A stretch of 64,000 nt of DNA from NCBI GenBank assembly GCA_946965045.2, contig OX337235.1, positions 3,224,001-3,288,000 on the forward strand. The letters run 5' to 3'. The notes under the pieces are model-generated. The model did not search any database. It saw only the letters and a program-made list of their open reading frames with translations, and was not told the DNA's origin. A program made the position numbers and the translations under genes. Positions 1-47,499 of the stretch are shown here, piece after piece (position 1 is the stretch's first letter; each line of letters opens with the position of its first letter). This stretch comes from Epithemia pelagica (lineage: Eukaryota > Protista > Bacillariophyta).

Positions 1-1056
1 TCGTGTTCTATCCTCTGGCAAATAAAATAATAATGAACTACTCCTATTGCACACTTCTAGACAGAGTCGCACACAGGTACCACAGTTCCAAAATGCATTG
101 GCATCCCAATCCAATCCTTGGGATGCTAGAGTAGGCGTGTGTACTTGGGATGGTACTGGATGTGCTCCCGGTGCCTTCTTCTCCCGGGGTTTTCTCGTCC
201 CATCAGTGGCTTGTGTTTTGACAGTTCCAGAACATGATCCTCAGTGCTAGGAGTTGTTGTCAGTGGGTCGTCCATCCAACTTGGTTTCGATTTGTTGGAG
301 ACGAGCGACGTGAAATTCAAGGTTACTGTGTTGTGACGTTACACCACCACGGAAGGCAAACTAGTGCCTGTGCTTCTCAAGGTAGTAGACCATGAGAGTC
401 TACGGTTCGAGAACCCAGGCACACAAACACGCACACGAATCCATGAATGCATTCCCCTTGCGACAATCATCACACCACCACAAAACTCACTGGATGTTGC
501 GGCTGCCGTCGAACCACCACTGTGTAACCTTAGTACGTGTCACCTTCCGTCCTGGAGCAATTTCAAGTCCACCCCGTCACAACAACAACAACAACAACAT
601 CAGTAGATTTGTTTCCATTGTCCCACAAACTGTGGTCGCTTCACCGTTCTTCTGGAAAGCCTTCTTTCATCAGTCTTGTTGGAAGTCAAAATGGTACACA
701 ACAACTTTGTATTTCCCGAGTAGTATATAGGACCGCCACTTTCTCTTGTTTTTCGAGGACCGTGAGTTTTCCCTCCCCTCGTCGTGCTGGAGCATTTCCG
801 TCCATGCAGAGAGTCTTGCAGTGTCACATCTTAGCCAAGGCATATTATTATGGTGCTTTCGTACATGTTTGGTGGGTACTGGATCACAACACACCCGTGT
901 CTCATCCCATTTCTCTGATCGTGGTCCATGGTTGGTTGGTGTGGCACGTCCTCGGGTCGCCCCCAACTACCATCCACCGCAACCTATTCTACACGAGAGA
1001 AATTCCTGTCGTACTAACGAACTTGAACGCGTCGTTGTGGGAATACTCGCCGCCAA

Positions 1057-2373
1057 TCATTCCTCCGTTTCTGGTTCGGCGAGTGCTTGTTCTTGTTGTT
1101 CTTGTTCTTCCAGTCGTTGAAGGAGGGCCATGGCCAGGTCGGGTTTGTTGCAACACACTTGATCGACGCCCGTGTCCAACAGGGCTTGATAACAGGCGGG
1201 GCCCTCCTCGGATCCCACATCGTTATACTTTTGGGGCAAGTCTTGGACCATGCCGACGGGTCCCCGGAACCAGGCCATGCTGGTCAAATTGGCGGCGGCC
1301 ATGGCGGCGACACGGTGTCGCGTACATTCATGGTAGGGGACATGAACTTGCGTGGCTCCACACGCCCGAGCGGCCGCCACCAAGTCCTTTGGCAGAGGCG
1401 ACCCAAACAAGGCACCCGTCGGATACCGGACCGAATCGGGTCGCAAGGTTCGCAATTCCTGCAATTGGGCATGATCAAAACTACTGTACGTACACCGCGT
1501 CGTCATTTTGTTGTTGTGGTTGTCTTGGTCAAAGGATTCCACCACGTCCAAGACGGGTTGGACCGTCCGCGGTCCCTTGAGTTCAATGGTAATGGTCAAG
1601 TTCGGGTAGGGTTGCAAGGCCACCAGTACATCCTGGAGGAGGGGAATGCGGGCCCGGGCCACCTCTTCCGGGGCCAAGTGGGCAAATTCGGGATAGGTGG
1701 GATCCAATCGCAAGGCTTGGACTTGGGACCAGTCCAAGTCTTGAATGGTTCGAGTTTTGGCGTCGTTTTTCTCATGGTCGTCGTGGTCCCACAAGACTTG
1801 TCCGTAGAGGGATCCCAAGGGCAGACCGGGACTGTCATTGCCATGAAAGACCACCACGGATCCATCGCGAATCACGTACACGTCCAGTTCGACACCATGA
1901 CACTGTGTGACACAGGCGAGAAAGGAGGGAATGGTATTTTCCAAGGCGTAATGCAAGGCGCCTCGATGACCCAAAATGCGAGGCCCTTTGGTAGTAGTAC
2001 GACGAGGAGTCGACACTGGAGTTGTCACACCCAAAACGTGACGCAAGGACAAGGACGACGACGCTTCCTTAGGGGAGGAGGAAGATGTCTCGAAGGTTTG
2101 GTTTGGTTCCTCTTGCGCCATGCTTTTGGTACAATGCCTCGCCAAGGAATGGTACTTGTTGTTGTAGTTGTGGTTGTTGTGGTTTCGTTGGATCGACCAA
2201 GACCCGACCAAGGATGCAGACAGTAAAGGAAGCAGCAGCAGCAGCAGCAATGGATGAACGATCCAAATCCCGAGAAATCTCCTCACCCGTGGTGGTTGTG
2301 TCGTTGTGGAAGCAAGAGTATTATTTTTTGTACGATCGACGACGATAAGTCTAGTAGGGACCACCATTCGCAT
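1057..2373 (-). CDS. Glycerophosphodiester phosphodiesterase (GDPD family), copy 1
   Basis: 438-aa ORF with ILGHRGA..ENTIPSF and CHGVELDVYVIRDGSVVVFHG, plus TIELKG and C-terminal GVDQVCCNKPD; hydrophobic poly-Leu segment near the N-terminus. Confidence 0.92.
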   Translation of the reverse strand: MRMVVPTRLIVVDRTKNNTLASTTTQPPRVRRFLGIWIVHPLLLLLLLPLLSASLVGSWSIQRNHNNHNYNNKYHSLARHCTKSMAQEEPNQTFETSSSSPKEASSSLSLRHVLGVTTPVSTPRRTTTKGPRILGHRGALHYALENTIPSFLACVTQCHGVELDVYVIRDGSVVVFHGNDSPGLPLGSLYGQVLWDHDDHEKNDAKTRTIQDLDWSQVQALRLDPTYPEFAHLAPEEVARARIPLLQDVLVALQPYPNLTITIELKGPRTVQPVLDVVESFDQDNHNNKMTTRCTYSSFDHAQLQELRTLRPDSVRYPTGALFGSPLPKDLVAAARACGATQVHVPYHECTRHRVAAMAAANLTSMAWFRGPVGMVQDLPQKYNDVGSEEGPACYQALLDTGVDQVCCNKPDLAMALLQRLEEQEQQEQALAEPETEE

Positions 2374-2805
2374 GGGCCGCTCGTTCTTCTACTCGTTCCA
2401 ACAGCAACAAGCGCCAACCTGTCTATCGTTGTCGTTTTTTTGTCTCTCGCTGTCTCTTTACACGGTTCTGTCTCTCTTTTTTTTCAACATCCATGCGAAT
2501 GATTTCTGCAGTGCGAATCACGCATGATTCAGCTATGTTGAGATTGGCGAACAGGTGGATCACAGTCCGTGTCATCGCTCATGTACAAATCGCCCATATA
2601 GCGATAGGAAGCCTCTAAACTGGCGATTCCTCCGATCCATCGGAGGGTAGCCATAATCTTCAAAGGAATAAACCAAAGCAAAGGAGTGTATATTTGTGTC
2701 CTTTTGGCTGTCTTGAAAAAAAGCGAAGACTTGCGCACAAGAATGAAGTTTTCAGTATCAAAACTCGCGTGCATTTTGACAACGACGACGACAAAAATGC
2801 TTTTG

Positions 2806-4227
2806 TCATATCAACCTCCATTTTTCCAAAGCATTTCTATAGTTCCATAGGAGACATTTCTCCAATATCTCAGCGGCTGCCAGTGAGTACAAGTCGTCCT
2901 GAGAATTTGACCAGCATTCGTTGAGGTTTTCCACACCAGGAATGGCAGTTACAAGATCCAAGTCGCCGTTGTCTTTTACTTCTGTAATAAGAGTCACACG
3001 ATGATCTTGAGGGTAGAATACGTGAACGTCAGCTCCAGTTATCGTCCAGCGAGCACCTTGGTTCTTGTTCAGTATCGCGTTGTTTCCTAGCTTGGGCAAA
3101 AGTCCCGCGGCAATTCCATTATTGTTAAATTCCAACTCCAATGGAATTCTGAAGCAGGGACAACCATCAATGATACTAATCGTAAACCCGCCCTCAGGTC
3201 GTACTGGCTTGATGGCAAACGTCTGCACTGTTTTTCGACGCTTACCTCTTCCCCGTCCAGTTCCATCAAAGTTTACATGGACGTCCCTGCTCAAAGCAAG
3301 GCGGTTATATTCGGGTGCATCAAGCCATTTATATTTTCCAGTGCATTGGGCGCTTGGGAAAATATGCGCAGACTCCGGCGCAGCAAGTGCAAAGGAGGAG
3401 TCGGTTTCTATCCGTTGGAATCGAAACGTGGTGTCGGTGGTTGATAGAAGAGTCACGTCAACCGAACCTTCGAATGATCTAGTTTCAACCACCATGTCAA
3501 TAGGGGGCGACATCGGATCTGCCTCCCCTGTTCGTGGTTTGTAGTGACTAAGCAAGACTGAGTTTTGAAACGTTCTTGCAAAGGGAGCGATTTCCGTGAC
3601 CTTTGGATGGTCAGTCTTGCTCCCCTGATCATCCAAAAGTTCTAGATCCATCTTGTTATGTAGTAAATACATTTCGACGTCACTAACAAATTTGGTAGCC
3701 CTATCAATTGTCGTGAAAACCACCGAAAACCTGAGGATTGAACGATCCTCTTGGGAACTCGCCACAGTTTCGAACGCAGTTTCTGCATCCAATTCTGGTG
3801 GATACAATCCACCAGGACAAGCCAATTTGAATAGCTGGAAACGGGCACCGCCGTGGCTTATGGGTCGAGATATCGTCCCTGATACTTTTTGAAATCGCTG
3901 GTCTGCCGCATCTGCAATCGCCGCATCTGCCTTCGCGGGTGCCATGGCAATCACGGGACGTGGTGTTCTTTCGCCGGGCAACGGGTCTGTGCTAGGAACT
4001 TCCTCCCATGGCTTAATAAACTTGTCTTCGTAGCCTTCAATCGTCACATCGGTGTCGGGGGGGTACACGGAAAGATTTGCCGCATCACAATGGCTGAGGG
4101 AATGTGGTAGCTCTGCCTTTACTTCCTTCGTCAAGTCAGCAACATCTTTAGGTGCTGGATTAATGTTAATGGGATGGCCCGCCGGTTTTTCCTTTCCCTC
4201 GTAATATAGCTGAACCCAGACAGACAT
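2806..4227 (-). CDS. CR (Crinkler/RHS-type) effector-like gene 1: header A + HNH cassette X
   Basis: Starts MSVWVQL, header ends VIAMAP (equivalent of the CRN HVLVxxP motif); C-terminal ESAHIFP...NRLALSRDVHVNFDG matches the HNH_2-type nuclease pattern. Start placed at the ATG at 4227. Confidence 0.8.
   Translation of the reverse strand: MSVWVQLYYEGKEKPAGHPININPAPKDVADLTKEVKAELPHSLSHCDAANLSVYPPDTDVTIEGYEDKFIKPWEEVPSTDPLPGERTPRPVIAMAPAKADAAIADAADQRFQKVSGTISRPISHGGARFQLFKLACPGGLYPPELDAETAFETVASSQEDRSILRFSVVFTTIDRATKFVSDVEMYLLHNKMDLELLDDQGSKTDHPKVTEIAPFARTFQNSVLLSHYKPRTGEADPMSPPIDMVVETRSFEGSVDVTLLSTTDTTFRFQRIETDSSFALAAPESAHIFPSAQCTGKYKWLDAPEYNRLALSRDVHVNFDGTGRGRGKRRKTVQTFAIKPVRPEGGFTISIIDGCPCFRIPLELEFNNNGIAAGLLPKLGNNAILNKNQGARWTITGADVHVFYPQDHRVTLITEVKDNGDLDLVTAIPGVENLNECWSNSQDDLYSLAAAEILEKCLLWNYRNALEKWRLI
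3859..3923. repeat. 65-bp hinge J, copy 1
   Basis: TATGGGTCGAGATATCGTCCCTGATACTTTTTGAAATCGCTGGTCTGCCGCATCTGCAATCGCCG, identical at 11874, 27713 and 43357; encodes AIADAADQRFQKVSGTISRPI on the minus strand. Confidence 0.97.
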
Positions 4228-4638
4228 GACGTATACTCGATGCCTACAATACGGCAAAGTTCGAGAGAATTATGGTTGCAACCGCTTTCTTGTGGTCTTT
4301 GACGACGGCGAACAAGTCGATCGAAGACGACAGGATGGATGGAGGCAGGCAGCAAACTGGCCCGCCCAGATAAACACGCGCGCAGCTCCTCCTAATTTGA
4401 GCCCGCGTTCCGGCTGGAGCGTCCGAGGTTGGCAGTACATATTTCAAAGGCCAACCTCGGACGCTCTCGGCGGGGAAGCACGAGTTGGTACGGACCACCT
4501 AACGAGCGGATGACGGACAGTGTATGGTGGCAACCAGTCCGAAAAATGGAATTTTTCTGCGCGTGATCGCTGAAACTCAAAATGTTGTGCACGAAAAATG
4601 ATACCACCACGGACTGAAAATCAACGATTAGAGGCTAA

Positions 4639-7600
4639 CTCCGTATCTAGCTATGCAGGTAGTTCTGCTCACATTTTTATAGTAGAGTAGGAAATTATTG
4701 TACGAGCGGGAGGTAGTAATTACCGAAAGTTCGCGCGATTCGCGCAGAAAAACGCCGGGCGAGCAAACCAAGGGGGAAAACCGGACCACAGGAGAAAGAG
4801 ACGGACGAAACGATGGTAACGACGATACCAAAGAGAGACGAAGCAATAGACGAGCATTAGAAATAGCAAGTTGAATGTGAGAATAGGAACAATAAAGCAA
4901 CAATCAGACAATATTCGAGGACTTACAATGCCGGGGATCAATCAGTGACAACTGAGATACCTGTGAAACACTGATAGTATTGTCAGTCGACAAACTCAAG
5001 GGCGACAAAAGATCCAAAGACAGGACAAAAGACTCACCAACCCAGCAATTATGAAGACTTCTTTGCAGTACATAAAGGAGAATGGAGAGAAGGATAGAAG
5101 AAAACCATGAAGAATATGAAAAGAAGTCATGTACTGCGAACAGAATGAAGTAAAGAGTGAGATTGATGCATATGGAAATAAGCATAAAACAGAAAGAAAC
5201 TTACCAAACCACCAGTCAACCAGACCGCTTCTTGCCATGCTTCTTGTACTTGCGTTGATTTGAGTGGTTGGGTGCAAGTTGTTGATATGAAATGGCTCCT
5301 GGTTGCTGGATACCAAGGATGGGTGGTTGAATCGTAGGGGGTACCATGCCAGGTTGAGGAAGGCCAAATTGCAAAGGGGCAGACTGAAGAACAGGTTGTT
5401 GAAGAATGGCTCCATAAAAGGGTTGCTGGGGTGGCGGTGGTTGGTAAGACTGAACAAATGGGGCCATGGGAGCAAACTGTTGAGGTTGCTGCTGGGCGAA
5501 AAACATTGGTTGTGGTTGTTGCATTGAAACATGATGCATGCCATGGGTAATGCATGGTATGGTGCCATGATTGGATGATGCTGATGACATCGACGACGAC
5601 GAAACAGGAGTACTCGAAGAAGAAGCATTCACCTTTGAATCAGACTTCTTCGTGGTTTTTTCACGGGGAGAAGAAGGAAAAACATCCCAGTCAAAACCAT
5701 CAAACAACGAACAAGTGGACTCATCTTCAGCGTCTATATCCAAAGGCGCGGCAGCTGGTGACTTCTTGTCCTTCGATGCACAAGGTTTCGAATCATCGGG
5801 TTCTGTGACGAACAAACAAGGAAAGGTAAGACAAGTGTCAATGGAAATGAAACAATCAGCAATCAACGACAGATGAACGTACCAGTTTTGACCGTCACAG
5901 CTTTGGCGTCAGAATACCAATTCGCAGTCAAAAGCTTTGCGTACGATTCAGAGCGAAGCTCCTGGTACGCAAAACTTGCCTGCTGGTCCGTCTTGTGGCG
6001 CCCAAACTTATTTACAAGCTTCTGTGGTGCGCCGGATGCCACAACGTTAGAAATACCGGTACGACGGCCTGTACGTGCAGTCGTACGTTGCCAGTCTTCT
6101 AAGCCACACCTCTTGAAGAGGATTTTGGCATTCTCGTTCGGTCAGTTCTTTCCCAGCTGCCCGATCGGTCGCATCGGTGGAGGTCCAGTGAATCCCTGAG
6201 CGACTGCCTTCTTGTATTTCGCTATGACGTCTTTGGACATGTCGCGAACCAACATGGTGCCAGCCCACCACTTGTCATTCGCAGATGGACGAGCCTTGCG
6301 CTCCTTGTCGGTGGCAATGTTTAGAAAAAGCAGTCCTGTCCAGCCAGGAGGAAGGGCGTGCTCGATCCAGTACTTTAGTAATTTGTACGTGGACCACGGG
6401 TCATCGGGGTTGTCGACTACCACATTCAATTCACGCTCATCCTCTCCATCCAGAGTCGGATTCGTCAGCGAGAGCTTCGAGCATTTCTCGCGAGAGCACT
6501 CTTTCAATTTGTATGCGGGAAGACCTTTCAAAGAACCATACGACTCAGGCAGCGCGGCAATATGCACTAAATCAGACACTCTTAATTTAGTAGTCTGTGA
6601 CAGAAAATCAACGTGTGAGAGCGGAAGAAGACACATGAAAAACCAACAATCCAACAGTACTTACTTCAATGGTACCACGTGGACCAAAGTCACGTTGCGA
6701 CTTGTACACTGTCATGCGTAGCAAATCGATTGGGACTCCGAAAGGATTGAAGGGGGGGTCCGCTTTGTTGCGGAATAAAAACTCGTCGTTCTCGACAACC
6801 TTGGCTTTCTTTGGACGGCGACCAAAGTCGGGCCGGATTTCAGCTTCGTCTTCAAAAAGTTTCTTACAAAACGCGTGAAAGGATTGCGGAAGATTGGCAA
6901 GATCCAAGCTGCTATATTGGATGCCGTTTGCATGAAAAACAGCAAACAGGTGGTCCAACATCTTCTTGATCACGGCGGGTTGATAAATCTTACCAGCCCT
7001 CGTGTAGAGGTTGGAGACGAAGACGTACAAAGCGAGGTTGAGCAGCTTGGCCTTCTCTGGTGTCTTGTAACCACGTAACAAGACGAAGAGTCGCAGAGTT
7101 TGTTTCGTAGAGTTGTCTGGATCGGGCATGACCTCGGTAAGTTTGAAGAGATCCTGGTGACGGGCCAAGATGCTCAGGAACCGTTCGACTGTTCTAGCTT
7201 TTTCGCGCTCATAGCCTGCCGTGTTCATTGACAGGTCGGTGAAAGATACTTTCTTGGCGTCGGCGCCATAGACGCGATCGTTCGAAATCGTTGCATACGA
7301 TGCCCAGGCATCGATGTCATCGGGAGTCTCGACAATCTCGGGAAGAGGGTTGGTCGCAAGGAAGTCCAGCGTGATCTTGCCTGTTGCTTGGTCTACCACC
7401 AAATTGGACCGGGACGAAGCAGCTTGTGCAGTCAATTTTAAGGATGGTGCAACAGGAACGGGGACGGTTGAGGTGTCTGCTGCTGCTGCCATTGACCTGG
7501 GAAAACAACAATCATCCACGAGGTTAGAAGAGAAGCGACCACCATGGAGAACCACTCATACAACAATTAACTTACACAGCTGGATCGTTTGATTGCTGTT

Positions 7601-8887
7601 GTCGCAACGAGTCTTCCACGGTAGATCCTCGGGTGGAAGGAACGTTTACCTCTCTGTTTGGCAAAAAGACGCGGTGAACAGAATGAGAAAAAGAACGAGG
7701 CGACAACAAAAACACAACAATCAAAGACTCTTACTCGTTGTGAGGAATGGGTTGAAGAGAGACAGGGTTCTCGGAAGTCTTGGATTGCTGTTGCATGCGG
7801 GTAGGACGACGGGTGGAAGGAATGTTCGTCTCTCTGTTTCGGAAAAAGAGGAAGCAACCATGAGAGTCTGAAGGAGGAGCGACACAAAGAAACACAACAA
7901 TCAAAAGAACTTACTGGTTGACAGGGATGGGCTGAAGAGGAACAGGGTGCGTCGGTTTGTTCGACTGCTTTGGAACAGGAACATGCAACGATCGTTTCTT
8001 GAGGAGAGACGACGAGTTACCATTGGATTCAGCAACGGCGGTAGAGATGCTGCGAGTTTTGCGAGACCCCGATACACGAACTGGAGACGCCTCATTCTCC
8101 TTGTTCGAAGTTGAGGCGGAAGCAGCGGCGGCTTTCTTCTTGTTGGCATTACGGGTCTTCATGGTTCGACTGCTGTTCTCAAAAACAAGTTGACACAAGA
8201 AATGAGAAATGAGAAATGACAGTATGAGGGAGGAGAATGAGGATGCGTGACAGTCGAAGGAAGATTTGAATTGCTAAGTGCGACCAGGAAGATTTGGACG
8301 CAAAAGGAAGACCACCATGGCCAAAATGGAGGAAAACAGGCCAAATCGATATGAAAACACAACAATCAAACAAGAAAACTTACAGTTCACAGGATCTTGG
8401 CGCCCTTGAGGCATCTGTGGAGTCGTTGTTGTCTTTGGAGCTCTCCTTGGTGAGATCTATTACGGTAACCCCCCTTCCTTCCCAGTTGAACATGTTGTCG
8501 GGCTCGTCGAAGATGAAGAGATATGAGGAAGACGAATCCGATGACTCCGAGGACTGGGACAGGGAGTCCGATACCAAATCAATCACAGACATGCTCAAAA
8601 CCAACAATCAAACACTTTTTGAAGTAGAGAAGCCGTCCAGAATGATGATCTCATTGTCGTCGACCTTCCTTTCTCCAGTTCTCGGATCGAGAGCAAGGAG
8701 ATGTCGACGAGATCTCTGGGGCCTAAGTGATCCGATGAACGGAATGTTTCAAATTTACATATTATAAGTAACAAGTTTATTTAAAGACTAAATTTTCTGA
8801 TGGGACTCCAAAATTTCCTCAACAGACATGTCCTGCTTATTAATTATAGAAGGGAGGTGAGAACTACCTGCATAGCTAGATACGGAG
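4639..8887 (-). mobile_element. TIR-bounded tyrosine-recombinase (Crypton-like) DNA element, 4249 bp
   Basis: Perfect 28-bp inverted repeats CTCCGTATCTAGCTATGCAGGTAGTTCT (4639-4666 and 8860-8887); TAA on both sides (4636-4638, 8888-8890); internal spliced YR gene. Confidence 0.8.
5216..8592 (-). pseudogene. Intron-rich tyrosine recombinase (Crypton-type) with one in-frame TGA
   Basis: Exons approx 8592-8384, 8172-7915, ~7830-7728, ~7650-7580, 7496-6665, 6594-5883, 5802-5216 join in frame via GTAAGT/GTAAGA/GTACGT..CAG introns. Motifs FGPRGTIE|TTKLRVSDL (box I), GQLGKN, TARTGRRT, GRH and Tyr (FAY). Stop at 6144-6142. The 3' end may extend through a further intron. Confidence 0.8.
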
Positions 8888-8893
8888 TAAGCA

Positions 8894-9070
8894 GATTACT
8901 CCCCTGTGTTTCTTAGTCCTTTCTCGTCGGGCGCCCGGCTGGTCGGGAGAATGACTCATCGGGCACATGTCTTGTCGGGCATGCGCCCTCCTCGCCACGT
9001 GCCCTCCTCGTCATTCTACCCTCCACGCCGGGCGACCCTCCTCTAAAGGACTAATACACCGTGAAGTAAT
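8894..9070. mobile_element. Possible small degenerate MITE
   Basis: Imperfect inverted ends GATTACT..GTGT..TTAGTCCTTT / AAAGGACTAA.ACAC..AGTAATC around a GC-rich core; no clear TSD. Confidence 0.35.
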
Positions 9071-9215
9071 CCTACTACTACATTACCTAGTTGGTTTCTG
9101 AAACTTAAAATTTCTTGTGGGTCATCACGACCCCAGCGACTGATTTTGACCTTAAATCGCTGAATAGAAAAATGTGCTGGGCGAAAAAAATGAAACACCG
9201 CCGTCTTTTTTAGCC

Positions 9216-9524
9216 TCATCGGATATATGAATGAGAAGACGCCGCGTTGACGCTTTGTGCATTGCCATTCACTGTAAAGCTTGTCAAGTTGACCATGTTT
9301 CCAACCTCGGTGGGGATTGGTCCAGTGAAATCATTGTAACTCAAATCCAAACGAATGTCTAAATTCAAGGCAAATATCTCCGGAATCAAGGTACCATTCA
9401 TTCGATTGCTCCCCAAGGATAGGTCACGCAGGTTGTCATTGGCTACTAGCCTAGGTCCGAACAGCAGCACCATTGTCGGTGGAAGTGGCCACGACCAAAT
9501 CAAACCATTCGGCCGTGACCACAA
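9216..9524 (-). pseudogene. Leucine-rich-repeat (plant-type extracellular LRR) gene fragment
   Basis: LRDLSLGSNRMNGTLIPEI and LDLSYNDFTGPIPTEVGNMVNLTSF follow LxLxxNxLxGxIPxExxxL; only about two repeats, no start context. Confidence 0.7.
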
Positions 9525-10259
9525 AATCTGGACGGACTGGTGTCACGTGATTGTGCCGGCATGGATGATGCTATGGTATTTGTTGGTGTATCCGTTGTGG
9601 GAGGGGCTGGAAAGGTGGGAATGTCACCTCCACCCTTGTTGTTGTCGTCGTACTTCCTTGCATTCGTTTTCTTCTTTTTTCAGCCATAGTTCCTCGTATG
9701 TCGCTCTTCAAAACCCGGAACTGGATAGAAGAAACACCGGATTCGAGGTTGGCCCTGTTTCTACAGGTTGTCCTGGCGCCTTGAACGCAGGCTGGCCGAT
9801 CCCATCGGCCACCACACCCTGTGAGATGCACGACCACCCGTCGTGGGAGGGGACTCAGGGACGTCCCAGTAGCCGCGTCCACGAGTGCACGCATGTACTT
9901 CCCCACGAGGGCTGCGACTCGGTAAGCATCAAAGCCACTCACTGTGCGCACGCCCTCCACCGTCAGCAGAGGTGTGATATCCCGTCCTGCGGTTGCAGAC
10001 GCCCAGAACTCACGCAGTGCGGCGTTGACGAGGTGGTGTAAGCGAGAGGTGCGGTTGCGAGCAGGCAGAATACGCTCCACCTGGTTCATTGCCACGGCTG
10101 CAACAAACGTATCACGGGGCCAAAAGGGGAATGCACTCGCCACCACGTGCAGGAACCAACCACACGCCTGTAGCAGCTTGTCCGGATGCCCTCATCAGGG
10201 AACAGAACATCATGAAGTCCAATTGAAAGACAAGCACACATTGAATGCTTTGGATAAAA

Positions 10260-39368: not shown

Positions 39369-40548
39369 AGAATGGATATAGCGAAATTGCAGACTACAGA
39401 TGGTGGAAGGAATATATTCCAGTTTGCATGCTCGTCCACGTGTCCACCAGATCCTTGCAAAGAGAGAAAATAATGCCAACTGTTTTGGTATGTCGTGTTC
39501 TATCCTCTGGCAAATAAAATAATAATGAACTACTCCTATTGCACACTTCTAGACAGAGTCGCACACAGGTACCACAGTTCCAAAATGCATTGGCATCCCA
39601 ATCCAATCCTTGGGATGCTAGAGTAGGCGTGTGTACTTGGGATGGTACTGGATGTGCTCCCGGTGCCTTCTTCTCCCGGGGTTTTCTCGTCCCATCAGTG
39701 GCTTGTGTTTTGACAGTTCCAGAACATGATCCTCAGTGCTAGGAGTTGTTGTCAGTGGGTCGTCCATCCAACTTGGTTTCGATTTGTTGGAGACGAGCGA
39801 CGTGAAATTCAAGGTTACTGTGTTGTGACGTTACACCACCACGGAAGGCAAACTAGTGCCTGTGCTTCTCAAGGTAGTAGACCATGAGAGTCTACGGTTC
39901 GAGAACCCAGGCACACAAACACGCACACGAATCCATGAATGCATTCCCCTTGCGACAATCATCACACCACCACAAAACTCACTGGATGTTGCGGCTGCCG
40001 TCGAACCACCACTGTGTAACCTTAGTACGTGTCACCTTCCGTCCTGGAGCAATTTTAAGTCCACCCCGTCACAACAACAACAACAACAACATCAGTAGAT
40101 TTGTTTCCATTGTCCCACAAACTGTGGTCGCTTCACCGTTCTTCTGGAAAGCCTTCTTTCATCAGTCTTGTTGGAAGTCAAAATGGTACACAACAACTTT
40201 GTATTTCCAGAGTAGTATATAGGACCGCCACTTTCTCTTGTTTTTCGAGGACCGTGAGTTTTCCCTCCCCTCGTCGTGCTGGAGCATTTCCGTCCATGCA
40301 GAGAGTCTTGCAGTGTCACATCTTAGCCAAGGCATATTATTATGGTGCTTTCGTACATGTTTGGTGGGTACTGGATCACAACACACCCGTGTCTCATCCC
40401 ATTTCTCTGATCGTGGTCCATGGTTGGTTGGTGTGGCACGTCCTCGGGTCGCCCCCAACTACCATCCACCGCAACCTATTCTACACGAGAGAAATTCCTG
40501 TCGTACTAACGAACTTGAACGCGTCGTTGTGGGAATACTCGCCGCCAA

Positions 40549-41871
40549 TCATTCCTCCGTTTCTGGTTCGGCGAGTGCTTGTTCTTGTTGTTCTTGTTCT
40601 TCCAGTCGTTGAAGGAGGGCCATGGCCAGGTCGGGTTTGTTGCAACACACTTGATCGACGCCCGTGTCCAACAGGGCTTGATAACAGGCGGGGCCCTCCT
40701 CGGATCCCACATCGTTATACTTTTGGGGCAAGTCTTGGACCATGCCGACGGGTCCCCGGAACCAGGCCATGCTGGTCAAATTGGCGGCGGCCAGGGCGGC
40801 GACACGGTGTCGCGTACATTCATGGTAGGGGACATGAACTTGCGTGGCTCCACACGCCCGAGCGGCCGCCACCAAGTCCTTTGGCAGAGGCGACCCAAAC
40901 AAGGCACCCGTCGGATACCGGACCGAATCGGGTCGCAAGGTTCGCAATTCCTGCAATTGGGCATGATCAAAACTACTGTACGTACACCGCGTCGTCATTT
41001 TGTTGTTGTGGTTGTCTTGGTCAAAGGATTCCACCACGTCCAAGACGGGTTGGACCGTCCGCGGTCCCTTGAGTTCAATGGTAATGGTCAAGTTCGGGTA
41101 GGGTTGCAAGGCCACCAGTACATCCTGGAGGAGGGGAATGCGGGCCCGGGCCACCTCTTCCGGGGCCAAGTGGGCAAATTCGGGATAGGTGGGATCCAAT
41201 CGCAAGGCTTGGACTTGGGACCAGTCCAAGTCTTGAATGGTTCGAGTTTTGGCGTCGTTTTTCTCATGGTCGTCGTGGTCCCACAAGACTTGTCCGTAGA
41301 GGGATCCCAAGGGCAGACCGGGACTGTCATTGCCATGAAAGACCACCACGGATCCATCGCGAATCACGTACACGTCCAGTTCGACACCATGACACTGTGT
41401 GACACAGGCGAGAAAGGAGGGAATGGTATTTTCCAAGGCGTAATGCAAGGCGCCTCGATGACCCAAAATGCGAGGCCCTTTGGTAGTAGTACGACGAGGA
41501 GTCGACACTGGAGTTGTCACACCCAAAACGTGACGCAAGGACAAGGACGACGACGCTTCCTTAGGGGAGGAGGAAGATGTCTCGAAGGTTTGGTTTGGTT
41601 CCTCTTGCGCCATGCTTTTGGTACAATGCCTCGCCAAGGAATGGTACTTGTTGTTGTAGTTGTGGTTGTTGTGGTTTCGTTGGATCGACCAAGACCCGAC
41701 CAAGGATGCAGACAGTAAAGGAAGCAGCAGCAGCAGCAGCAGCAGCAATGGATGAACGATCCAAATCCCGAGAAATCTCCTCACCCGTGGTGGTTGTGTC
41801 GTTGTGGAAGCAAGAGTATTATTTTTTGTACGATCGACGACGATAAGTCTAGTAGGGACCACCATTCGCAT
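40549..41871 (-). CDS. GDPD-family phosphodiesterase, copy 3
   Basis: Same motifs; poly-Leu tract two codons longer through (GCA)n slippage. Confidence 0.92.
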   Translation of the reverse strand: MRMVVPTRLIVVDRTKNNTLASTTTQPPRVRRFLGIWIVHPLLLLLLLLLPLLSASLVGSWSIQRNHNNHNYNNKYHSLARHCTKSMAQEEPNQTFETSSSSPKEASSSLSLRHVLGVTTPVSTPRRTTTKGPRILGHRGALHYALENTIPSFLACVTQCHGVELDVYVIRDGSVVVFHGNDSPGLPLGSLYGQVLWDHDDHEKNDAKTRTIQDLDWSQVQALRLDPTYPEFAHLAPEEVARARIPLLQDVLVALQPYPNLTITIELKGPRTVQPVLDVVESFDQDNHNNKMTTRCTYSSFDHAQLQELRTLRPDSVRYPTGALFGSPLPKDLVAAARACGATQVHVPYHECTRHRVAALAAANLTSMAWFRGPVGMVQDLPQKYNDVGSEEGPACYQALLDTGVDQVCCNKPDLAMALLQRLEEQEQQEQALAEPETEE

Positions 41872-42303
41872 GGGCCGCTCGTTCTTCTACTCGTTCCAAC
41901 AGCAACAAGCGCCAACCTGTCTATCGTTGTCGTTTTTTTGTCTCTCGCTGTCTCTTTACACGGTTCTGTCTCTCTTTTTTTTCAACATCCATGCGAATGA
42001 TTTCTGCAGTGCGAATCACGCATGATTCAGCTATGTTGAGATTGGCGAACAGGTGGATCACAGTCCGTGTCATCGCTCATGTACAAATCGCCCATATAGC
42101 GATAGGAAGCCTCTAAACTGGCGATTCCTCCGATCCATCGGAGGGTAGCCATAATCTTCAAAGGAATAAACCAAAGCAAAGGAGTGTATATTTGTGTCCT
42201 TTTGGCTGTCTTGAAAAAAAGCGAAGACTTGCGCACAAGAATGAAGTTTTCAGTATCAAAACTCGCGTGCATTTTGACAACGACGACGACAAAAATGCTT
42301 TTG

Positions 42304-43725
42304 TCATATCAACCTCCATTTTTCCAAAGCATTTCTATAGTTCCATAGGAGACATTTCTCCAATATCTCAGCGGCTGCCAGTGAGTACAAGTCGTCCTGA
42401 GAATTTGACCAGCATTCGTTGAGGTTTTCCACACCAGGAATGGCAGTTACAAGATCCAAGTCGCCGTTGTCTTTTACTTCTGTAATAAGAGTCACACGAT
42501 GATCTTGAGGGTAGAATACGTGAACGTCAGCTCCAGTTATCGTCCAGCGAGCACCTTGGTTCTTGTTCAGTATCGCGTTGTTTCCTAGCTTGGGCAAAAG
42601 TCCCGCGGCAATTCCATTATTGTTAAATTCCAACTCCAATGGAATTCTGAAGCAGGGACAACCATCAATGATACTAATCGTAAACCCGCCCTCAGGTCGT
42701 ACTGGCTTGATGGCAAACGTCTGCACTGTCTTTCGACGCTTACCTCTTCCCCGTCCAGTTCCATCAAAGTTTACATGGACGTCCCTGCTCAAAGCAAGGC
42801 GGTTATATTCGGGTGCATCAAGCCATTTATATTTTCCAGTGCATTGGGCGCTTGGGAAAATATGCGCAGACTCCGGCGCAGCAAGTGCAAAGGAGGAGTC
42901 GGTTTCTATCCGTTGGAATCGAAACGTGGTGTCGGTGGTTGATAGAAGAGTCACGTCAACCGAACCTTCGAATGATCTAGTTTCAACCACCATGTCAATA
43001 GGGGGCGACATCGGATCTGCCTCCCCTGTTCGTGGTTTGTAGTGACTAAGCAAGACTGAGTTTTGAAACGTTCTTGCAAAGGGAGCGATTTCCGTGACCT
43101 TTGGATGGTCAGTCTTGCTCCCCTGATCATCCAAAAGTTCTAGATCCATCTTGTTATGTAGTAAATACATTTCGACGTCACTAACAAATTTGGTAGCCCT
43201 ATCAATTGTCGTGAAAACCACCGAAAACCTGAGGATTGAACGATCCACTTGGGAACTCGCCACAGTTTCGAACGCAGTTTCTGCATCCAATTCTGGTGGA
43301 TACAATCCACCAGGACAAGCCAATTTGAATAGCTGGAAACGGGCACCGCCGTGGCTTATGGGTCGAGATATCGTCCCTGATACTTTTTGAAATCGCTGGT
43401 CTGCCGCATCTGCAATCGCCGCATCTGCCTTCGCGGGTGCCATGGCAATCACGGGACGTGGTGTTCTTTCGCCGGGCAACGGGTCTGTGCTAGGAACTTC
43501 CTCCCATGGCTTCATAAACTTGTCTTCGTAGCCTTCAATCGTCACATCGGTGTCGGGGGGGTACACGGAAAGATTTGCCGCATCACAATGGCTGAGGGAA
43601 TGTGGTAGCTCTGCCTTTACTTCCTTCGTCAAGTCAGCAACATCTTTAGGTGCTGGATTAATGTTAATGGGATGGCCCGCCGGTTTTTCCTTTCCCTCGT
43701 AATATAGCTGAACCCAGACAGACAT
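42304..43725 (-). CDS. CR effector-like gene 4: header A + HNH cassette X
   Basis: Near-identical to gene 1 (I>M in header, E>V in cassette). Confidence 0.8.
   Translation of the reverse strand: MSVWVQLYYEGKEKPAGHPININPAPKDVADLTKEVKAELPHSLSHCDAANLSVYPPDTDVTIEGYEDKFMKPWEEVPSTDPLPGERTPRPVIAMAPAKADAAIADAADQRFQKVSGTISRPISHGGARFQLFKLACPGGLYPPELDAETAFETVASSQVDRSILRFSVVFTTIDRATKFVSDVEMYLLHNKMDLELLDDQGSKTDHPKVTEIAPFARTFQNSVLLSHYKPRTGEADPMSPPIDMVVETRSFEGSVDVTLLSTTDTTFRFQRIETDSSFALAAPESAHIFPSAQCTGKYKWLDAPEYNRLALSRDVHVNFDGTGRGRGKRRKTVQTFAIKPVRPEGGFTISIIDGCPCFRIPLELEFNNNGIAAGLLPKLGNNAILNKNQGARWTITGADVHVFYPQDHRVTLITEVKDNGDLDLVTAIPGVENLNECWSNSQDDLYSLAAAEILEKCLLWNYRNALEKWRLI
43357..43421. repeat. 65-bp hinge J, copy 4
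   Basis: Identical to other copies; context cassette X + header A. Confidence 0.97.
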
Positions 43726-44073
43726 GACGTATACTCGATGCCTACAATACGGCAAAGTTCGAGAGAATTATGGTTGCAACCGCTTTCTTGTGGTCTTTGA
43801 CGACGGCGAACAAGTCGATCGAAGACGACAGGATGGATGGAGGCAGGCAGCAAACTGGCCCGCCCAGATAAACACGCGCGCAGCTCCTCCTAATTTGAGC
43901 CCGCGTTCCGGCTGGAGCGTCCGAGGTTGGCAGTACATATTTCAAAGGCCAACCTCGGACGCTCTCGGCGGGGAAGCACGAGTTGGTACGGACCACCTAA
44001 CGAGCGGATGACGGACAGTTTATGGTGGCAACCAGTCCGAAAAATGGAATTTTTCTGCGCGTGATCGCTGAAA

Positions 44074-45021: not shown

Positions 45022-47151
45022 TCAATGTTCGCGAGCAGACAATTCACGCCATTGTTCCGGCAACCACCTTTTACCGGAAACCCCAAAGAAGCTTCGAAGC
45101 TGTGGTCTTGCAAGACAAGTCCATCCGCGCCTCTCTGATGGATTGACAGCAGGATGCCCACGGACAAGATAGGAATTGGGCAACGTGGCAGGTTGATTTG
45201 GAATCTCTTTCCCTTCCTTTAGTTGGTATCCATAGAGATCATATGTGACAACCCCTGACTTTACATCCTTTTGCCACAAACAAACAAAAACATCGTACTC
45301 TGGAAATTTAGCAAACTTCGGGTAGTAAATAGAAACTTTGGGGAAGTTCCCCTCCCAGTGATGGTTCGAACAGATTTCACCCAGTGCCTTCTGCAATTCT
45401 TCAAGATTCTTGACCATCGATATGGTCCGAGTGGCGGGCAATGGATAATTATAAAAGAGACTTGTCGAAATCGTCTTCATTTCGAAACTCACAGTTGGGA
45501 TGCACGAGACATCTCCAAAATTACCAGAAACATATCGCAACCAGAGAACAAGCAAAAACAAAGACTCCCATCCATCACCGCTTTCTTCTTTGCTCGTGCT
45601 CCAACTTTTCGCATCTTGTACGACTTGACTTTGCGATAGTCCGAAACGACCTTGGATTGAATCTGCAAGATTTCCCAACAACTCCATCAAATAGCATGGT
45701 ATCCAATAGCTTTTGCCATTGCCGTTATCCAAAAGTGCGTCAATATTCGTCCCTAGTGGCTCTCCGGAGAAGAAAGATCCCAAGACTCTTTGCAGCAAGT
45801 CGAAGTCCAATGTTGTACCACTACAAGCCCTCTCTGTACGACGGGCGATCTGCGCTTTCTCAGCGAGCCCTTCAACCGTAAGAGTTGTCACCAGCAATGC
45901 CGGAATGAGGCCGTAATAGAGAGCCATTCGCGGCGTGAGATCGGTGATATTTAGATTTTGTCTTGCACCTGATAGATCCTGAATCAGCGGTAAGGTTTTA
46001 ACTTCCATGTCACGAGAGGAAAGGGACGGCAATGCTTTTTCTGGATTTGTTGAGCTCAAATGGGAAGAAAACACATAGTATCTTCCTCGTTGGGTGAGAA
46101 AGTTCTCCTTCAAGAAAAGTACAATGTCTTTGTCCAACTCCACGTTGTTCAACTCGTCAATCAACAATACGACTTGGTTGGTCCCAAGAAAAGAAGACAC
46201 CTCGTCTGCCGTGATGCTGTATTTCTTGAAGGCTTTAAAATCATCACTTATCGCACCTGTCCTTAAACTCGCTGGACGAGCATCAAACGCAATCCGCCGG
46301 CAAAGCATTTCAAGACTCGAGTCTCCTCTCAAAATCTCATAATCGCAATTGGAGAAGTCGTTGAATGAGACAAAGAGAGTTGGAATACACTGTTCGCGAA
46401 GTGCCTTTGCCAACTCGTAGAGTGCCCTCGTCTTCCCTCCCCTGGAGCAGCGAGCCAGGGAAGTGATTGGGACTCGGTACGATCCATCGGCTGCATCCTC
46501 CTTCAGGCACAAATCCGTCACCCTCCCCACGATGTCATCAAGCCATCCTTCTTGGCTTACGAACGGAGGTGTGATCGGTTCAAGATGAGGAATTTCCAAG
46601 AGGTTCATCCACTGTTGAGCCGGAATGCGGATTCTTTTTGGCGGACTTGCCTCTGGCACTGTCCATTGCACGCTTTTAAGTTTTGAGTTAAAATAGTAGG
46701 TCCGCCCCTCGCCGTCTACCATTTCTTGCCATCCTTCTGGAAGGGGCGGTGAATCTGCCGGTTGAGCTGGAATGCGGATTCTTTTTGGCGGATTAGCCTC
46801 AGGCACTGTCCATTGCACGCTTTTAAGTTTTGAGTCTGCAATCGCCGCATCTGCCTTCGCGGGTGCCATGGCAATCACGGGACGTGGTGTTCTTTCGCCG
46901 GGCAACGGGTCTGTGCTAGGAACTTCCTCCCATGGCTTCATAAACTTGTCTTCGTAGCCTTCAATCGTCACATCGGTGTCGGGGGGGTACACGGAAAGAT
47001 TTGCCGCATCACAATGGCTGAGGGAATGTGGTAGCTCTGCCTTTACTTCCTTCGTCAAGTCAGCAACATCTTTAGGTGCTGGATTAATGTTAATGGGATG
47101 GCCCGCCGGTTTTTCCTTTCCCTCGTAATATAGCTGAACCCAGACAGACAT
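45022..47151 (-). CDS. CR effector-like gene 5: header A + WW domain + NTPase + REase cassette Z
   Basis: Header A identical to gene 4; LPEGWQEMVDGEGRTYYFNSKLKSVQWTVP is a WW domain; P-loop-like ARCSRGGKT, Walker B LLIDE, YGLIP; REase-like SGDGWESL..FPEYDVFV..YGYQLKEG. Confidence 0.82.
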   Translation of the reverse strand: MSVWVQLYYEGKEKPAGHPININPAPKDVADLTKEVKAELPHSLSHCDAANLSVYPPDTDVTIEGYEDKFMKPWEEVPSTDPLPGERTPRPVIAMAPAKADAAIADSKLKSVQWTVPEANPPKRIRIPAQPADSPPLPEGWQEMVDGEGRTYYFNSKLKSVQWTVPEASPPKRIRIPAQQWMNLLEIPHLEPITPPFVSQEGWLDDIVGRVTDLCLKEDAADGSYRVPITSLARCSRGGKTRALYELAKALREQCIPTLFVSFNDFSNCDYEILRGDSSLEMLCRRIAFDARPASLRTGAISDDFKAFKKYSITADEVSSFLGTNQVVLLIDELNNVELDKDIVLFLKENFLTQRGRYYVFSSHLSSTNPEKALPSLSSRDMEVKTLPLIQDLSGARQNLNITDLTPRMALYYGLIPALLVTTLTVEGLAEKAQIARRTERACSGTTLDFDLLQRVLGSFFSGEPLGTNIDALLDNGNGKSYWIPCYLMELLGNLADSIQGRFGLSQSQVVQDAKSWSTSKEESGDGWESLFLLVLWLRYVSGNFGDVSCIPTVSFEMKTISTSLFYNYPLPATRTISMVKNLEELQKALGEICSNHHWEGNFPKVSIYYPKFAKFPEYDVFVCLWQKDVKSGVVTYDLYGYQLKEGKEIPNQPATLPNSYLVRGHPAVNPSERRGWTCLARPQLRSFFGVSGKRWLPEQWRELSAREH
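46614..46835 (-). repeat. 147-bp-period repeat (1.5 WW units) in gene 5
   Basis: 46614-46688 and 46761-46835 both encode SKLKSVQWTVPEAxPPKRIRIPAQ. Confidence 0.9.
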
Positions 47152-47499
47152 GACGTATACTCGATGCCTACAATACGGCAAAGTTCGAGAGAATTATGGT
47201 TGCAACCGCTTTCTTGTGGTCTTTGACGACGGCGAACAAGTCGATCGAAGACGACAGGATGGATGGAGGCAGGCAGCAAACTGGCCCGCCCAGATAAACA
47301 CGCGCGCAGCTCCTCCTAATTTGAGCCCGCGTTCCGGCTGGAGCGTCCGAGGTTGGCAGTACATATTTCAAAGGCCAACCTCGGACGCTCTCGGCGGGGA
47401 AGCACGAGTTGGTACGGACCACCTAACGAGCGGATGACGGACAGTTTATGGTGGCAACCAGTCCGAAAAATGGAATTTTTCTGCGCGTGATCGCTGAAA

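Follow-up and report, generated by a model that had tools for sequence, protein, structure and literature searches.

We analyzed a 64,000-nucleotide stretch of the genome of the diatom Epithemia pelagica (assembly GCA_946965045.2, contig OX337235.1, positions 3,224,001 to 3,288,000 of the forward strand), which is referred to as the window and numbered from its first letter. In this window, positions 4635-9079 on the minus strand are probably a copy of a recently active Crypton-type transposon with a tyrosine recombinase (YR), which has been disabled by a TGG to TGA change. Read in gene orientation, the unit starts with a block of ~190 nt (designated R) and the 5′ inverted repeat, continues with the recombinase gene, and closes with the 3′ inverted repeat, whose end is ...GGAGTTAG. 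The features are as follows, with family labels explained in the next section.

4635-9079, minus strand: complete mobile unit of family W (4,445 bp, or 2 nt more if 9080-9081 belong to it); matches the copy at locus L009
8894-9071, minus strand: hairpin or palindrome R of the 5′ end block (whole block, 8891-9079)
8888-8890, minus strand: TTA (TAA on the plus strand) beside the 5′ repeat, conserved in W, A, B, C, and M
8845-8892, minus strand: 5′ inverted repeat, internal to the unit, with a perfect core at 8860-8887
5216-8162, minus strand: recombinase gene, counted from the first ATG with good support up to the stop, based on pieces of open reading frames (ORFs) and homologs
7620-7969, minus strand: 180-bp tandem duplication of an exon-plus-intron unit in the gene
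6665-7496, minus strand: conserved N-terminal exon, 76% identical to P0001
5883-6594, minus strand: catalytic exon, with an Arg codon at 6580-6582, Arg-x-x-Arg (RxxR) at 6064-6075, His at 5995-5997, and Tyr at 5965-5967
6142-6144, minus strand: nonsense codon TGA in the catalytic exon (TGG, Trp, in the compared relatives)
4634-4681, minus strand: 3′ inverted repeat, which ends 4 nt from the 3′ terminus and has a perfect core at 4639-4666
4635-4638, minus strand: 3′ terminus TTAG, the TAG of which (4635-4637) recurs at the 5′ junction (9078-9080)

Extent, copies, and boundaries of the mobile unit

The N-terminal ORF of the recombinase gene led to a cluster of relatives in the ENA assembly ERZ21939226, which provided all comparison loci (L001-L011). 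One contig end of this assembly (L011) corresponds to window positions 260-13169 at 99.95% identity, with the element and its TGA included. The assembly thus comes from the same organism, and the four families described below are paralogs in one genome; the possibility that ERZ21939226 represents a second species was ruled out by this match. A 602-aa ORF beside the element (10263-12068, minus strand), which has no Pfam match, is also encoded identically in ERZ21939226, and this again indicates that both assemblies originated from the same organism.

In all, eleven related copies were recovered from this organism, and they fall into four families and a miniature. Family W has a second copy at L009:6553-10999 that is 98.8% identical to the window copy. 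The homology begins and stops exactly at window positions 9079 and 4635, and the surrounding DNA is unrelated. Family A has four copies (L001-L004), of which L001, L003, and L004 share 99.1-99.3% identity among themselves and ~70% with W; L002, which is split by a retrotransposon (Copia-type, RVT_2; copy at L002:2290-10419), was left out of this comparison. Families B (L005 and L006) and C (L007 and L008) have two copies each, with pairwise identities of 99.4 and 99.8%, respectively. There is also a non-autonomous miniature (M) of 390 bp at L006:13442-13830, which contains R, both inverted repeats, and a short interior, and a partial second miniature (97% identical) at a contig end (L004:13184-13287).

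The gene-5′ junction is readable at nine full-length loci and in the miniature. The shared sequence starts ~190 nt outside the repeat at 8890, with block R beginning (GT)AGTA..., and the 3′ end of the units lies 4-6 bases past the 3′ repeat, at ...GGAGTTAG(TA) or ...GGGGTTAGT. In families W, A, B, and C and in miniature M, the flanks diverge only beyond those two ends, and all copies have the same orientation relative to R. Across families, R and the last 300 nt are kept at 80-93% identity, compared to 58-74% for the coding DNA, as expected of cis-acting ends.

The original prediction had placed the boundaries at the inverted repeats, regarded as terminal inverted repeats (TIRs) with a TAA target-site duplication (TSD). 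The arms themselves are as it described them: perfect over 28 bp (4639-4666 on the plus strand and 8860-8887 on the minus strand), with no chance match in 100 shuffles and with TAA beside both (4636-4638 and 8888-8890). These properties would suit a 4,255-bp unit that extends from TIR to TIR with a 3-bp TAA/TTA duplication and is moved by its own recombinase on a 28-3-28 dyad or by PIF/Harbinger in trans. The C-TTA...TTA-G context also resembles a PIF target, and a DDE_Tnp_4 fragment occurs elsewhere in the genome (L003:5815-6144). However, R lies outside the 5′ arm at all nine full-length loci and in the miniature, and the flanks diverge beyond R, so that the gene-5′ boundary is not at 8890 but ~190 nt beyond it, at 9079-9081. 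This makes the TAA at 8888-8890 internal rather than a TSD, and the same TTA...TTA is found in every copy of the four families; such invariance indicates that the triplet was inherited and not made at each insertion. With no copy lacking R and no DDE domain found in the unit, a TIR-to-TIR element appears extremely improbable. The suggestion that a YR gene was captured by a non-autonomous TIR or PIF-type element does not hold either, given that no copy lacks R and that the ends carry Crypton-type direct repeats (see below).

Alternatively, two elements may be involved, with a TIR-bounded recombinase element inserting site-specifically at the end of dispersed miniature inverted-repeat transposable elements (MITEs) of the R type. 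R does resemble a MITE, reads cover its core at very high depth, there are solitary R-bearing miniatures, and YRs can be site-specific. However, the identity of R is 100% within A and within C and 98.9% within W, compared to 93-95% between sister families and 82-84% between deeper branches. In other words, R is identical beside copies that are 99% identical and 5-18% different in other families. This divergence follows the element's own family tree, which argues that R moves with the element. Moreover, the orientation is always the same, and the miniature has both inverted repeats, which identifies it as a deletion derivative rather than a bare target. We consider the two-element explanation very unlikely.

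Contigs of reads from three DNA runs of one study contain joints between 4780 and 6455 and between 8721 and 8860, which indicate internally deleted relatives elsewhere in the genome. The former lacks 1,674 bp, including the catalytic exon, and the latter lacks 138 bp beside the 5′ repeat. Read depth was higher over the termini and R, and the very high depth of the R core suggests that R-bearing miniatures may be numerous. A metagenome scan with the conserved 3′ motif returned only one chance bacterial match.

The probable recombinase gene and its product

The expectation of a single intron-containing gene with neither a DDE transposase nor a reverse transcriptase (RT) was borne out. The unit has one multi-exon gene on the minus strand, and Pfam searches found no domain, DDE and RT included, in the tested ORFs of at least 40 aa from the unit or its relatives. 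The DUF3435 captain family (PF11917) had no match in Pfam searches of the gene and its homologs. The six introns proposed originally are plausible. Two introns were checked by hand for reading frame and GT-AG borders, and for one of the two (6664-6595), further support comes from a transcript-derived protein of Entomoneis paludosa, which aligns unbroken across the 6665/6594 exon junction. The N-terminal exon aligns with residues 236-513 of this same protein. An automatic splice search did not recover a reliable full gene model.

An exhaustive HMMER search found 76 relatives, none of which is annotated. In an alignment of 30 homologs, the near-invariant residues are an Arg, an Arg-x-x-Arg, an Arg-His, and a Tyr, and three of the 30 weakly touched PF00589. 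The sole PDB match of the homolog profile was the tyrosine recombinase XerA (E = 0.5), with RxxR placed on HxLR, RH on GH, and Tyr on the nucleophile; a single-sequence phmmer search against PDB gave no matches. An ESM Atlas feature search with the catalytic ORF yielded no usable match. For the catalytic exon, an AlphaFold (AF2) model was obtained with a predicted local distance difference test (pLDDT) score of 86. Foldseek returned nothing significant with this model, and in an exhaustive structural search (VIA-align wide), the top 19 rows were all tyrosine recombinases, type IB topoisomerases, or QRICH1. The structural Z-scores were 6.8 for Cre, 6.8 for Xer, 6.7 for XerA, 6.1 for XerH, and 6.0 for QRICH1, and the integron integrase IntI (2a3v) was also matched. 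The DUF3504 domain of QRICH1 is a domesticated Crypton recombinase (PMC3212892).

The ratio of nonsynonymous to synonymous substitution rates (dN/dS) between W and A is 0.073 over 512 codons, and that between the two young W copies is 0.9 (i.e., neutral). Based on the R..RxxR..H..Y residues, the modeled fold, and this substitution pattern, we conclude that the gene likely encodes a divergent YR kept functional by selection, in agreement with the assignment made originally.

The copy in the window carries an in-frame TGA at 6142-6144 that was overlooked. The equivalent codon is TGG in L001-L003, L009, and one contig of run X3, where a T to C variant is found at 6142; the TGA is also present at the same locus in the second assembly. 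With this in-frame TGA, the window copy is unable to make the full-length enzyme. In the N-terminal exon of L009, there are five extra C in a homopolymer (window 6744-6757; 6759), which may be a frameshift or a long-read homopolymer error.

End architecture, direct repeats, and surroundings

The inverted repeats are 39-48 nt in length and conserved as a pair in all families; as an imperfect repeat, the window arms extend over 48 nt at 83% identity. Concerted changes in the two arms distinguish the families: relative to W, there are two in A and five each in B and C. This conservation and covariation supports the view that the inverted repeats are functional-looking sequences.

Block R alone folds as DNA with an energy of -53.7 kcal/mol (z = -8.7), and the consensus fold of five family representatives has 68 pairs, of which 12 show compensatory double changes. 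In silico joining of the ends brings the 3′ repeat, R, and the 5′ repeat together in a single rod of ~290 nt, which has 89-100 pairs in each of the five families. In this joined-end fold, the TTA triplets pair except for a conserved middle T·T. On the gene strand, the facing loop bases are G·A or A·G at 15 of 19 positions in W, 17 of 24 in A, 19 of 28 in B, 16 of 22 in C, and 17 of 26 in M, counts that include a few mismatches within the inverted-repeat stem; the opposite strand has C/T. Tandem G·A pairs are stable in DNA. Because most of the rod's mismatches are G·A, and on the gene strand only, the pattern points to one strand; what the enzyme recognizes may be this strand in its folded form, or a cruciform.

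The idea that the repeats meet on circularization was right in spirit, but the arms would not form a 28-3-28 dyad since the ~190-nt R lies between them. The circle junction predicted originally, ...ATACGGAG-TAA-CTCCGTAT..., would not be expected.

Direct repeats are found at both ends of the units: AG in L009, TAG in the window copy and family A, TAGT in C, and TAGTA in B. Fixed TSDs of 3, 6, or 8 bp for the whole unit were considered, and all fail across copies. The family C copy in L007 interrupts a gene encoding tetratricopeptide repeats (TPRs; L007:5114-5632 and 9825-10658, minus strand). Removal of this copy restores a 466-aa ORF with canonical TPR spacing only when GTAGT stays behind, which indicates that one TAGT was already present in the target. 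Cryptons have terminal direct repeats of 4-7 bp that are interpreted as microhomology, and they have no TIRs (PMC3212892; PMC13465315). The variable end identity of 2-5 nt found here matches the literature description of Cryptons.

Regarding the surroundings, the element lies within an 8-kb segment (3927-11873) that is bounded by 68-bp direct repeats (3859-3926 and 11874-11941). This segment is absent from a paralogous copy in the window, in which 23855-27780 matches 1-3926 and 27713-28846 matches 11874-13000; the difference may be due to an insertion or a repeat-mediated deletion. The window also contains near-identical duplications (99.7%) at 1-4575, 39493-44073, and 46835-47499. Their homology with the element locus ends at 4575, which is 60 nt before the element and not at the element, and no empty site was found within the window. 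Just left of the element (4410-4473), a 24-nt inverted repeat (88%) encloses a 16-nt loop, and both duplicated copies of the flank have this repeat as well.

Relationship to known systems and proposed mechanism

The family shares several properties with CryptonS (e.g., CryptonS-1_PTri of Phaeodactylum tricornutum; Kojima and Jurka, 2011; PMC3212892). Both are found in stramenopile hosts and have an intron-containing YR, a probable one in this family, as the only enzyme, and they are alike in size (4.4 kb here and 4.67 kb in CryptonS), low copy number, and the presence of non-autonomous derivatives. The terminal direct repeats are 5-7 bp in CryptonS and 2-5 bp here. The termini differ, with TATGG in oomycetes or CTGTAAG in P. 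tricornutum for CryptonS, and the motif of CryS1_PTri as printed (HSAKRS...GW...Y) has low similarity by eye to that found here (RTGRR...RH...Y). Moreover, Cryptons are described as lacking inverted repeats, whereas this family has subterminal repeats of 39-48 nt and a 190-nt hairpin block; of the two repeats, one is at the terminus and the other 190 nt inward. Within the limited literature searched, no description was found of a Crypton that has inverted repeats, a terminal hairpin, or a split palindrome.

Other eukaryotic elements have partial likeness. DIRS1-type elements likewise have a YR, and their inverted repeats and internal segment together define the joined-end junction. However, they encode RT/RNase H and rebuild this junction by reverse transcription, and no RT was found here; the RT/RNase H that accompanies the YR in DIRS, Ngaro, and VIPER elements is thus lacking in this unit. 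MarCry-1_FO, a Fusarium Crypton fused to mariner, also combines a Crypton recombinase with TIRs, but its TIRs and TA duplication belong to the co-encoded DDE transposase; the family described here has no DDE, and its repeats are non-terminal on one side. PIF/Harbinger elements and Tourist-like MITEs have a similar appearance of TWA flanking inverted repeats in a C-TTA-G context. By comparison, the unit in the window has no DDE/Myb gene, its TTA is inherited and internal, and its true ends are not mutual inverted repeats. Finally, Starships are giant cargo-carrying elements of Pezizomycotina with a DUF3435 captain, unlike this 4.4-kb element with a single gene in a diatom host.

In bacteria, the integron attC/IntI and CTX-phage attP(+)/XerCD systems involve YRs that act on an imperfect palindrome working as the fold of one strand. 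The gene-strand G·A mismatch pattern is a signature of the attC/CTX kind, and single-strand use may likewise apply to the diatom elements. The bacterial sites differ in being 60-150 nt long and in having extrahelical bases, whereas G·A stacks are present here.

We know of no study of the mechanism by which Cryptons move. Starting from the observed boundaries, the co-mobility of R, the conservation and covariation of the ends, the selection on the enzyme and its fold, and the direct repeats, a mechanism may be proposed for this family. The recombinase would excise the unit as a circle through exchange across the short direct repeats. The circular form would carry a palindrome of ~290 bp made up of the 3′ repeat, R, and the 5′ repeat, with the joint in its stem, between the repeat stem and R; the predicted joined-end junction is ...GATACGGAGT-TAG-TAGTAGGATTACTTC.... 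Integration would then take place at targets that have (G)TAG(T) in common with the joint, which would leave direct repeats of variable length and no fixed duplication. It is possible, though on balance doubtful, that recombination proceeds via a folded single strand or an extruded cruciform, with the G·A-zipped hairpin completed by the repeats as the substrate and a cut a few bases from the T·T. Such a process would be a eukaryotic counterpart of integron attC/CTX-phage recombination and define a new Crypton-like subclass.

Several points weigh against interpreting these elements as Crypton-type transposons that move in this manner. For the enzyme, the recombinase protein has no Pfam match, the best structural Z of 6.8 is rated as middling by the tool, and this protein has an Arg in place of the first His of the canonical catalytic tetrad. 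For the ends, the covarying palindrome would be explained equally well by symmetric duplex binding and by fold-back, and the nearest-neighbor energies used do not model G·A pairs. For the movement, neither an empty site nor a circle junction or excision footprint was seen, and the contigs of the three DNA runs have no joint that skips the element. The empty site in the TPR gene is reconstructed and not an observed allele; a search for an intact homolog returned only the query. Lastly, the relationship to the named Crypton groups is tentative.

The replacement of the canonical His by Arg and the lack of a Pfam match would also be compatible with the recombinase-like gene being a cargo or regulator, with the unit moved by another factor, for example by a replicative or hairpin-primed process acting on the palindrome. 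Crypton-derived DUF3504 domains are non-catalytic (PMC3212892), and QRICH1 is among the structural matches. However, the Arg, Arg, His, and Tyr nucleophile are near-invariant in the 30 homologs, this is the only gene in the unit and is under strong purifying selection between transposing families, and the short direct repeats of variable length fit exchange by a recombinase. The cargo explanation is thus unlikely, and the Crypton-type transposon with its own YR is the reading that we prefer.

For genome annotation, these elements call for caution, as the combination of a TIR and TWA mimics PIF/Harbinger here and misplaces the boundary by 190 nt. According to the literature, Cryptons have boundaries that are hard to define and lack conserved cis sequences (PMC3212892). 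In contrast, this family has sharp ends, a covarying end structure, non-autonomous derivatives, and copy pairs that are 98.8-99.8% identical. These features put the mechanism within direct experimental reach, down to the junction of the circle and the choice of strand and target. Should the strand-specific G·A hairpin prove to be the substrate, single-strand recombination by YRs would extend from bacteria to eukaryotic transposons.

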